Source of the DNA: Auanema rhodensis
Lineage: Eukaryota; Animalia; Nematoda
Direction: 5' to 3'
DNA: 64,000 nucleotides
Assembly (NCBI GenBank): GCA_964057225.1
Contig: OZ059894.1
Coordinates: 17,546,001 to 17,610,000 of the forward strand
This document shows positions 57,248 to 61,644 of this stretch, in pieces. The notes under the pieces were generated by a model, which was not told where the DNA came from, ran no database searches, and worked only from the letters and a program-made list of their open reading frames with translations. Within the stretch, counting starts at the first letter, position 1; each line of letters opens with the position of its first letter. The position numbers were made by a program, and so were the translations under genes.

Positions 57248-60200
57248 TTAACTGTGAGTCCAAGTTAAACTAAAACTATTTGAAACAAATGATTTAAGAG
57301 TTATTAGATTTAAGCTTTGTAAATGAAATATTTTTGTGAATGGAGAATATGTTGTTTTCTGTGTATTAACGAAAATCTGGAAAAAAAAGAATTTAAATCC
57401 TCTTATCTTATCTTCTATCTTACCTGTGTTCCATTCAATTTGAAACTATTAAAATATGGAAAATATGGATATCCAAAGAATTCAATTATGTTTATTGGTG
57501 GAATTGAAATAGAATTCTATAAAAATATTTAATTAAAATAGAAAATTTAACAAATAAGTTTACCGAATTTCCAGATTTTGGTGTTCCAGTTAAATAACCT
57601 GACGTTGAATTATATCCGAATGTCAAATCCCATTGAAGACTTAAATTATTAAATTTATAAATTTATAATTATATAAATTAACCTAGGATGAGATTCAATA
57701 TCAGTTATTACATCATCTCCTGAATCCCAATATAGTGATCCAGATGAAGTATTATTCAATAAAACAGCTACTTTCAATGATAATGGAGTAAGACGAGTTT
57801 CTGTTAATGTTAAAGATGCTTCTGAATGAGTAGCTATGATATGTCCACCTAAATATATAATTTATAATAATCAATTATTATAATAAAACCTTTATAGAAA
57901 TGTGGTAATGTATCATTTGCTATAAGAATGTCTTGATAATATACTGAATCAACAGCAATTCCATATCGATTTCCAAAAGCGTAATACCACGAACCTAATG
58001 GAAAATATGTTCGAACTGTTTTTGCTCCCTTAAAATTGATATTTTATTTCAAAAAACAGTAATAGAGATATATTCAAACTTACAGCTTCAGTAATAGGAA
58101 CTACCATAATAGCTGAACCCCAAAAAAATTGATAATCAATCTCAATTGATTGTAAATCAGCTGGATATTCAAAAAATAATGGTCTCATTACTGTACCTCC
58201 AAAACGAGCAACATTATAATGAAGACTAAAATATTATTTTTGAAATTATTTTATTTTAAAAATAAAAAAAATTACTTATATAGATAAGGAAGATATTTAT
58301 ATTTAGTTGTAAGAGAAGATGAAGCAGCTTTTTGAATAGAATCATAAATGAAAATGTTTTTTCTTCCTTCACTTTTGACATCATGATTAAATCTAAATAA
58401 AGATAATTTAATTTAAAAAAAATTGGAATCATCTATTAAGTCTTATGTATATAGATTTTGAATTTTTATAAAAAAAACCTTGACAAGCTGTGGAATGATC
58501 CTAACTGGAACCACCGACGACATAAATCTTCCGTAAATGCTCCAGATGATCCGCAGATGTCAGAGCCAACAAAAGGAATTCCAAACATATTGAATGCAAG
58601 AACACCTTTCTCATCATTAATAGTTAGAAAAAAATAAAGAAAACGCTTTTACAACCTGTTATTGAACTTAAAAGATCATCCCATGTTGCAGTATTTCCAT
58701 CTAGCCAATGTCCACCATAAGAACCAGAAGAAACAAATGTAGAACTGCAAAAAAAGGTTGTTTTATCTTATTTTTAATTTTTTTGAAATATGTTTGTAAT
58801 TAAACTTATTTATGAATTTTCTTTAAAAATACTGTTCAATCTCAGATTTAACCAGATGAGATGTACAAGAATTTTGCTATTTTCTTAAATATTTGTTCTT
58901 TTCTTTTTTTTTCAAATTATACAACTTCCTTTAAAAATGTTTAAACTTTACCGTGAAATAACCATTGGACGTTTATTCAGATTAGACTTGAAAGCTTTAT
59001 GAGTTGCTATTGATTGAGATATTCCATATAAGTTTCTTGTATCATAAAAAGTGCTAAAGGTTCGTGAAGTTCTACCTTCCATACATAAGCTTAATTCAGA
59101 TATTGCATTTGTTCCAGAATATTCCTATGTTGCAAAAATAAAAAATAATCAAGATAATTAAAACGAAGATGAACCTGTAGCTTATATGGAGGAGTATCCA
59201 AATCATTTTTCTTAGGACATTCTAATACTTTTCCCATATTTAACGGTTCATTTCTATTCAATGTTATTCCGTCAAAATCAATCTAAAATTAGTTTTGTTT
59301 ATAAATATTTTTCTAAAATTTCTTATTTATTTATGTATTTACACATTATTTATTTATTTATATTATTAAAATTATTTTAAAATTTTAAAAACTACTTTTG
59401 ACAGTTCTTCCCCTTCTTTTTCATAAACTTTCGTTTTCATTTCATTCGTTTACCATCATTCGCGATCTAATAGGAGAAAAACGCGTCCGTTGAATGTGCA
59501 CGGATGGCCGAGCGGTCTAAGGCGCCAGACTCAAGAGTAGTTCTCTTACCACGGGATAGTGGCTGGGTGTTCTGGTCCTCGAATGAGGGCGTGGGTTCAA
59601 ATCCCACTCCGTGCAGTAACTTTTGCAATTTTCAAAATTGTTTAAAATTGTTCTTTTTTCATTCAAAGTTATAAAAAATGAATAAATTTTGAACAAAAAT
59701 TAATTTTCAAACCTTTTTATGAAAGTTTTCAATTTCATTGCCCCACCATTGTTGAGTTCTTCCGAGTGGATCTAAAAAGTCTATGAAAGCTACAGCTTCT
59801 TTACTGAATCCACCACCTAACATAGTCTAAAACATAATTAAATAATCGGAAATTATAATTTTTAATTACCGGAGTTCCCTTTGTAGTCGGATATTTATCA
59901 TTTATTTTAGGTGGTTTAGTTGAATCTGGCCATGTAACTAATGTTGCATCCTAAACATACATAGACAGATATTCAAAATATTTTAAAAACAACTTTTGAA
60001 ATCGCTTCTTTTAGTTGTTGTGAATTTGCAGGTAATACAGGATCAAATTCCAATGAAGTTTTAATATTTTGATTTTTTAATTTTTGGACATAAGAAGGTA
60101 AACCATTCCAGTTCTTAAATAATATTTTGGTCATAAATTTTATATAAAACATACTTTATTTATTGTAAATGATGTAAAATCATCTTGATATTCATGATTC

Positions 60201-61644
60201 ACATTCATTACATCTAAATGATTTGTAAAATTCATAATTTTTGATAAAGAAGTTTGTAATGATTGATATGTTGTAGCTGTTTCTCCATACTGAAAATGCT
60301 TAATTATGCTCGATGATGTTAAAACTCTCAAACTTGAAATCCAAATGCCCAGTATGGTTGTAAAGTTGGTAATCCAATATAAGAATGATATTGTCTAATA
60401 ACTTCTTCTGGTGTAGGTCCTGGGAAGAAAGCCATTTCTAACTGTCCGCTAATTGTACGATATGTCAAAATTGGCCCTAATACAACTTCCTTAATTAAAA
60501 TTGATATAAATTAATTTTAAAAATAAATATTTACTTGTGGAGCAGAGTTGAAGAATAAAACTCCATGAGCTTTACCATCTTTTTCTAAACAAAGGTAAAA
60601 CGGATGAGTTCCAAACAAGTTTTTGGTTGGTTTTTTCGGATCAATTTTAGGGTCATTCATCATAGTATATGCAGTATATACACTAGTATCATGCTAAACA
60701 ACAACAAAACTGAAAATATTTTTAAGAAAGAAACTCACTCGAAGTGTTTTGGATTTATGTTCTCCTAAACCATAAATATTTCTTGATGGTAAGAATGATG
60801 AAATTTCAATAAATTGCGGAGAATAGAAAAATCCTCCAAATGAAGTATCAAAGATAATATTTCCAGTTGATTTTCTTCGAATAATGAAAGCATAATCAGA
60901 TGTACCAACAACACTTGCCGACATATATTCTAACTTTTCAGTAGAAGATATACCTTTTCGAGGTATTGATATAGATGGTTTATAACTGAATTAATTATTT
61001 TCAATGTTGTTTCTACAAACGATTCTCACGATTGTGGTGATGAGATAATGATTTGAAGTGTATCTTCAATTGCTCTCCAACTTTCATTCAAATATTTTTC
61101 CCCGTTTTGGAACCCATTTTGAACATCTAGAAATAGATTTTTATTAATTTTAAATAATATTTTTTATAGAATTATATAACCATACTATTAAATTTTAATA
61201 AAATATTTGGTGATCCTTGTAAATCAGTAACATATGCTGACCTTCTAGGCCGAGAACAGTATGGAAAATTCTGTGGATTTCCCTTCTAAACAAAAAAAAA
61301 CTAAACTTCTTTAATGCGATTTTAATCGGTTTTTGATAAAAATAGAATATTTTCTTGCATGAGCAAAACTCTAAATGATAATTTTATTAATTTATCAAGA
61401 TTTGTAACATTTTATTATAATTATAAATATATTATTAATATATTATTAATATAATTTAATTAAAAATTATAACAAAAAAACAAACTGGAGGACTTTTCCA
61501 TGTACATGCTCTTTCATGACAACCAATTTCTCCTATACCATCAGGTCCACAATCAATATAGAATTCTTCAGCTTTCACAATTAATAGAATAGAAATAAAA
61601 TACAAAATATACAAATGAAATGATGAGAATGATGATATTATCAT
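57248..61644 (-). CDS. GH31 alpha-glucosidase (maltase/sucrase, aagr-like) homologue with trefoil domain; catalytic residues substituted
   Basis: Signal peptide, IDCGPD..C..RAC.W trefoil, [80 protein letters not shown]; checked exons splice in frame. Confidence 0.92.
59498..59615 (+). tRNA. tRNA-Leu(CAA) with 34-nt intron (59536-59569), antisense within a GH31 gene intron
   Basis: GCACGGA/TCCGTGC acceptor stem, A-box TGGCCGAGCGG, CCAGA/TCTGG anticodon stem with CAA at 59532-59534, long variable arm, GTTCAAATC T-loop, downstream TTTT. Confidence 0.96.

Follow-up and report, generated by a model that had tools for sequence, protein, structure and literature searches.

A GH31-like protein of the nematode Auanema rhodensis that has lost both catalytic aspartates and most of its sugar pocket: a probable pseudoenzyme

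The DNA analyzed here (the window) comprises 64,000 nt of the Auanema rhodensis contig OZ059894.1 (assembly GCA_964057225.1, positions 17,546,001 to 17,610,000 of the forward strand). On its minus strand it carries a gene homologous to the α-glucosidases of glycoside hydrolase family 31 (GH31), whose product, hereafter the GH31-like protein, has replaced both catalytic aspartates and 10 of the 13 residues that line the sugar pocket. We consider that this gene probably encodes a pseudoenzyme, one that would be secreted, maintained by selection and active through binding. It would represent a fast-evolving, lineage-specific paralogue of the nematode AAGR-1/2 (GAA/MGAM-like) enzymes.

The reference for the catalytic residues is the human GAA structure paper (PMC5653652), in which D518 is the nucleophile and D616 the acid/base, and which lists the residues of the -1/+1 subsites. 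Single exons of the gene were aligned with PDB chains using phmmer. The 11-residue motif of exon 11 pairs with GAA FDGMWIDMNEP, placing Thr463 opposite W516, Asn465 opposite D518 and Arg466 opposite M519. A 21-residue peptide of exon 13 pairs with residues 527-554 of the N-terminal MGAM domain, where Asp565 lies over G541 and Gly566 over D542, the equivalents of GAA G615-D616. Asp565 also takes the place of the Gly that invariably precedes the acid/base Asp. Among the 67 canonical sequences used for comparison (61 nematode plus outgroups), the W, D and M of the nucleophile motif are present in 67 of 67, as is the G-D pair of the acid/base motif. Exon 7 alone returned no GH31 match from the PDB, because this exon is too diverged. 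A preliminary description of the locus, made from the DNA letters, had claimed the loss of both aspartates, and the alignments with PDB chains bear this out with Asn465 and Gly566. Its reading of the Asp to Asn codon in exon 11, of HWLDGN in exon 13 and of NHEY in exon 7 proved exact in sequence and position (Table 1), and the RFNH motif that it reported is found with SR and FNH on either side of the exon 14/15 junction.

The replacements reach well beyond the catalytic pair. The pocket was defined as 13 residues from the GAA structure, the two catalytic aspartates included; seven of these columns are invariant in the canonical set and the other six nearly so. Three of the 13 are kept in the GH31-like protein, namely R600 (Arg550), W613 (Trp563) and H674 (His625, with a one-residue insertion ahead of it). 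The others are replaced: D282 by Asn214 (a second alignment places Pro216 here instead), W376 by Thr310, D404 by Asn337, I441 by Glu373, W481 by Phe425, W516 by Thr463, D518 by Asn465, M519 by Arg466, D616 by Gly566 and F649 by Ser599. At the other positions with a conservation of at least 90%, 115 of 160 residues are kept, as against 3 of 13 in the pocket (Fisher p = 7e-4). The same contrast appears along the gene when the identity of each exon to the canonical proteins is expressed relative to the identity of the canonical proteins among themselves. The lowest ratios, 0.29, 0.43 and 0.46, belong to exons 7, 3 and 15, whereas exons 19-21, which encode the distal C-terminal domain, show ratios of 0.92-1.02. 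Since the low ratios lie in the pocket exons and the C-terminal domain is at parity, the divergence appears to be aimed at the catalytic face, with the remaining fold still constrained.

Judged by the nucleophile Asp, the acid/base Asp and the set of -1/+1 residues, the GH31-like protein does not resemble an active GH31 enzyme on any count. Because the nucleophile and the acid/base are gone, α-glucoside hydrolysis by the Koshland retaining mechanism of the family should be excluded. The cavity should be wider and more polar, since four large aromatic residues have been lost and a His, two Glu, an Arg and a shifted Asp have been gained. These new residues (His338, Glu339, Glu373, Arg466 and Asp565) are polar or charged and not random hydrophobics, which could instead suggest an enzyme re-tooled for another substrate or another chemistry, for example with Asp565 as the acid/base and Glu339, Glu373 or His338 as the nucleophile or base; the retention of R550, W563 and His625 and of a reading frame kept by selection would also suit such an enzyme. 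We hold this to be quite unlikely, however, in view of the presence of both aspartates in 67 of 67 canonical relatives, while the replacement of the invariant Gly and the loss of the four large aromatics of the sugar platform form the pattern of a dead pocket and not that of a specificity switch. To our knowledge, no GH31 activity has been characterised in which either aspartate is missing.

A hydrolase fold can be retained under selection after catalysis is lost, as in α-lactalbumin, which derives from C-type lysozyme. Chitinase-like lectins of family GH18 acquired their lectin character through loss of the catalytic residue alone, and lectin-type pseudo-glycosidases usually keep the cleft. 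Among the functions offered in the preliminary description were those of a glycan-binding lectin and of a decoy for glucosidase inhibitors. The retained trefoil domain and the precedent of the GH18 chi-lectins would speak for an α-glucoside lectin or an active-site inhibitor decoy of this kind, working through the old pocket with no catalysis. In contrast to GH18 chi-lectins and α-lactalbumin, which keep or adapt the sugar cleft, the cleft residues of the GH31-like protein are largely erased. The aromatic and polar residues that a lectin-type cleft would preserve are replaced at the equivalents of W376, W481, W516, F649, D404 and D282, and the lectin proposal is weakened further by the loss of I441 and M519. 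The decoy proposal is weakened in the same way, as the GAA residues that contact 1-deoxynojirimycin (DNJ) and acarbose, namely D404, D518, D616, W376, I441, W516, M519, F649, W481 and D282, are all replaced (PMC5653652). Because the residues that hydrogen-bond to or stack on DNJ and acarbose are gone, both proposals become unlikely, and we give little credence to a function in the old pocket. By comparison with GAA, α-glucosides, DNJ and acarbose could probably hardly be bound in the canonical -1/+1 site.

The departures from the canonical sequence could in principle stem from the assembly or the annotation. When the spliced protein and three canonical homologues were compared with the window using tblastn, a single collinear exon set was recovered, and neither a second GH31 paralogue within the 64-kb window nor an alternative exon with canonical motifs in the locus, long introns included, was found by these queries. 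Hidden canonical exons in the long introns were thereby ruled out. In DNA runs that come from three studies and carry the labels of three organisms, 0.71-0.99 of the sampled 31-mers are present. As the changes are many, amounting to dozens of substitutions as well as indels over many exons, and the 31-mers occur in the DNA runs of three studies, a sequencing artefact does not account for them, and we attach next to no probability to an assembly or annotation error.

The gene model, assembled by hand and verified with a script, consists of 21 exons and 20 introns, with GT...AG at all 20 introns. The coding sequence (CDS) runs from an ATG at 61644 to a TAA ending at 57248 and measures 2727 nt, which amounts to 908 codons uninterrupted by stops; an acceptor-like TTTAG precedes the ATG by 3 nt. 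Intron length is mostly 42-52 nt; introns 1, 10, 12 and 14 are longer, at 200, 430, 207 and 86 nt, respectively. Exon-by-exon Pfam searches assigned Trefoil (PF00088, E = 8e-4) to exon 1, PF13802 (E = 1.9e-4) to exon 5 and PF01055 to exons 12 and 14 (best E = 1.9e-11, exon 14). The only hydrophobic segment of the 908-aa protein is N-terminal and signal-peptide-like (Kyte-Doolittle, 19-residue window), a membrane anchor is absent, and the sequence contains seven N-x-S/T sequons. From the N-terminal segment and these sequence features we infer that the protein is secreted. The signal peptide, the trefoil domain and the approximately 20 in-frame exons of the preliminary description thus find their counterparts in the hydrophobic N-terminus, the Pfam Trefoil match and the 21 exons of the model.

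In blastp searches the spliced protein matches nematode AAGR-type proteins with E = 0 and 35-38% identity over about 900 aa, whereas nematode AAGR-type orthologues are about 50-57% identical among themselves. The closest match is from Mesorhabditis belari (P0384; 38% identity, 640 bits), and the nematode-specific insertion ahead of the VWP loop is present in the GH31-like protein. In two maximum-likelihood trees the protein falls inside the nematode AAGR-1/2 clade, with Shimodaira-Hasegawa-like approximate likelihood ratio test (SH-aLRT) values of 99 and 100, although its own position at the base of the clade is not fixed. Its terminal branch measures 1.67 and 2.3 changes per site in the two trees, against medians of 0.45 and 0.31, and is about 5-7 times the median length. 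The AAGR-1/AAGR-2-type enzymes (C. elegans aagr-1/-2 and their counterparts in Pristionchus, Mesorhabditis, Haemonchus, Ascaris, Strongyloides, Plectus and others) share its architecture of signal peptide, trefoil, PF13802, PF01055 and C-terminal domains at a length of about 930-960 aa, against 908 aa here. What sets the GH31-like protein apart from them is the absence of the two catalytic aspartates and a pocket in which 10 of 13 residues are replaced. Human GAA and MGAM have a homologous fold, and the alignment of their motifs with the GH31-like protein is unambiguous, with the equivalents of R600, W613 and H674 kept; the difference from GAA lies in D518, D616, D404, W376, I441, W481, W516, M519, F649 and D282, all of them replaced.

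No close relative was found: among 332 HMMER matches to the longest exon, exon 4 (82 aa), in an exhaustive search of 1.84 billion representative proteins, none exceeded 57% identity over 50 residues. Hence the protein, as well as any close orthologue, appears to be absent from the collections. The nearest exon 4 fragments were rejected as members of the lineage, as their clusters consist of spiders, mites, Caenorhabditis bovis and ENA contigs. Six JGI metagenome loci from a scan with exon 12 (L001-L006) were likewise ruled out as orthologues, being 31% identical and having one long exon. Their GH31 gene is eukaryotic and AT-rich (30-33% GC), has a single 1.5-kb exon and occurs in six metagenome assemblies.

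Whether such a long branch is compatible with an open frame was assessed with a neutral simulation, in which this CDS was subjected to point mutation at the base composition of the window, indels and splice-site loss being ignored. Under these settings 2% amino-acid change left the frame open in 7% of runs, and at 5% or more none of 200 runs retained it. Because the neutral frame closes at about 2-5% change and the branch carries about 2 changes per site, the open frame points to maintenance by selection. Expression was approached through sequencing runs. Four RNA-like runs of one study hold 0.47-0.48 of the sampled words, and the fraction of 31-mers that are exon-only is 0.480; this equality is what complete, spliced, intron-free transcripts would give, and the gene may well be expressed. 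The preliminary description had presented the gene as an intact homologue, not decayed and kept by selection, and this part of it stands on the open 908-codon frame at the end of a long branch, on a C-terminal domain conserved as in active enzymes and on a word share of the spliced type.

The lack of a close relative in protein collections and the very long branch might also be expected of a young unitary pseudogene or a functionless relic, with its frame open and transcription still ongoing. A neutral frame gains stops after about 2-5% change, yet the branch spans 1.7-2.3 changes per site and 10 of the 13 once-invariant residues of the pocket are different. GT-AG and phase are moreover preserved at all 20 introns, conservation of the C-terminal domain equals that in active enzymes, and the word share in the four runs fits a fully assembled, spliced mRNA. 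We therefore regard decay as very improbable, and a selected pseudoenzyme remains the preferred explanation.

A cluster of TGATAA sites upstream of the gene, noted in the preliminary description, was recovered as a trio confined to 40 bp, with the ATG about 205-240 bp further downstream. The AT-rich 64-kb window contains 78 TGATAA sites, and three or more of them occur together in only 0.3% of 150-bp windows. Intron 1 contains a second TGATAA/TTATCA trio, at 61334, 61376 and 61392. The arrangement fits a gut pattern driven by GATA factors and gives no more than a hint of intestinal expression.

GH31 copies with a replaced nucleophile were also found in ascarids, in Toxocara canis (P0004, P0165, the N-domain of P0013, and P0062), Anisakis (P0134/P0167) and Parascaris (P0168). 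Their nucleophile motifs read ...LSNNEP, ...LTNNEP, ...LSMNEP, ...IVRNEP and ...IKRNEP, and they keep 3-6 of the 13 pocket residues together with 80-89% of the other conserved positions. Most of them retain the acid/base Asp, unlike the GH31-like protein, and in several a second GH31 domain is joined in tandem, whereas the GH31-like protein is single-domain. In Toxocara P0013 a dead domain fronts a canonical one, and in P0165 two dead domains are fused; these fusions suggest, by analogy, that dead domains can serve beside active ones. The ascarid copies are annotated as maltase-glucoamylase or sucrase-isomaltase. A profile search seeded with them was dominated by two-domain vertebrate SI/MGAM and gained only five nematode sequences.

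Except for P0062, whose place is not fixed, the ascarid copies belong to an ascarid-specific clade (SH-aLRT 100). Joining this clade with the GH31-like protein is rejected by the approximately unbiased (AU) test with p = 0.003, for a group named post hoc, after the tree had been seen. A common origin with the ascarid dead copies was ruled out on this basis, and because the joint grouping is rejected, the losses in the GH31-like protein and in ascarids appear to be independent. For Ascaris suum, an expansion of GH31 with abundant GH31 proteins in larval secretions (excretory-secretory products) and in the intestine has been described (PMC3789772); the nucleophile motifs are there termed 'largely conserved', and dead copies are not described. 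In the literature searched, we found no description of GH31 pseudoenzymes or inactive GH31 homologues.

Altered motifs also occur in other animals. The N-domain of mammalian MGAM2 (P0012, P0016) has WIEMDEL and WIERDDL, the mite Tropilaelaps (P0053) has LTNNEP and an HWLDE similar to the motif of the GH31-like protein, and the C-domain of a crinoid protein (P0005) and a hemichordate cluster (P0088, WLKMNEP) have altered catalytic motifs. These non-canonical domains, intact elsewhere, have the nucleophile and/or the acid/base substituted; they belong to unrelated lineages, show fewer pocket changes than the GH31-like protein, and none is closely related to it. At the level of sequence motifs, dead or altered GH31 domains thus represent a recurrent feature across animals.

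With regard to function, we propose that the GH31-like protein would retain the four-part fold of the family (trefoil, N-terminal β-sandwich, (β/α)8 barrel and C-terminal sandwiches), in which the -1/+1 pocket has been dismantled, so that α-glucoside hydrolysis would be lost and binding in the old pocket probably lost as well. The protein, predicted to be N-glycosylated and secreted and perhaps produced in the intestine, would most likely act by binding, as a scaffold, a partner or a receptor-like protein, through the remodelled cavity with His338, Glu339, Glu373, Arg466 and Asp565 or through other surfaces. A role as a partner, also among the options of the preliminary description, or as a scaffold is possible. 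It is an unlikely but conceivable extension of this proposal that the rebuilt cavity forms a new ligand site and that the protein belongs to a set of gut-expressed binders of glycosidase fold that sense microbial or dietary molecules and do not cleave them, with an independent parallel in the ascarid GH31 expansion. Several points weigh against the proposal of a selected pseudoenzyme acting by binding. R550, W563 and His625 are retained, so that residual or altered sugar contact is possible; we infer selection from a single sequence; the RNA nature of the four runs is a guess; and the exon 2/3 boundary, which lies in a poorly conserved region, is less certain than the rest of the model.

The features of the locus are collected in Table 1, together with other elements of the window. 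Antisense to the gene, within intron 10, lies a 118-nt tRNA gene that ARAGORN did not report; its anticodon loop reads CTCAAG, and an insert of about 33 nt comes next, which makes it a Leu(CAA)-type gene interrupted by an intron. A precursor of mir-255, a nematode microRNA family, scores above the Rfam gathering score near the start of the window. Downstream of the GH31-like gene on the same strand, an exon matches the cuticlin C-terminal / ZP-C domain, and near this cuticlin-like exon lies an open reading frame (ORF) whose tail is hydrophobic. This neighbour looks like a cuticlin-like/ZP gene, as far as its domain match indicates.

Table 1. Coordinates of the GH31-like gene, its informative exons and other elements of the window.
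Feature	Position	Strand	Basis
Coding region, probable GH31-like pseudoenzyme	57248..61644	-	Gene model, translation; collinear with nematode AAGR-type proteins (tblastn, blastp)
Exon 1: start codon, signal-peptide-like N-terminus, first half of trefoil (P-type)	61486..61644	-	Pfam, Kyte-Doolittle
Exon 7: barrel strands/loops, W376 and D404 region; Thr310, Asn337-His338-Glu339-Tyr (60199-60188)	60155..60289	-	Motif table, pocket mapping
Exon 10: insert-I tip, VWP to GFS; W481 equivalent is Phe425	59713..59826	-	Alignment
Exon 11: nucleophile motif; Asn465 codon 59258-59256; W516 to Thr463, M519 to Arg466	59175..59282	-	PDB alignment to GAA
Exon 13: RSTF...HWLDGN (58710-58693); R550 and W563 kept; Asp565-Gly566	58656..58744	-	PDB alignment to MGAM, column counts
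Exons 14-15: GSDICGS (F649 to Ser599), SR-F-NHD (His625 kept)	58276..58605	-	Pfam PF01055, motif table
Exons 19-21: distal C-terminal β-sandwich	57248..57639	-	Per-exon identity ratios 0.92-1.02
Three TGATAA (GATA-factor type) sites	61848..61886	.	Motif count
tRNA gene, Leu(CAA)-type	59498-59615	+	Rfam RF00005, 50.8 bits
mir-255 precursor	754-810	-	Rfam RF00900, 54.1 bits
Exon with cuticlin C-terminal / ZP-C domain	55358-55516	-	PF25301, E = 3.7e-10
ORF with hydrophobic tail	54630-54881	-	

GH31 enzymes such as GAA, MGAM, SI and glucosidase II are of medical and nutritional importance and are always discussed as enzymes. The GH31-like gene of A. rhodensis provides a natural case in which the fold appears to be kept and the pocket specifically erased. 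Expanded enzyme families often contain dead paralogues, which limits the significance of a single example. If binding proves to be the function of this protein and of the ascarid copies, they would add a new functional class for the GH31 fold in nematode gut biology, and 'glycosyl hydrolase' matches in parasite secretomes, which are now read as enzymes, may need to be reread.

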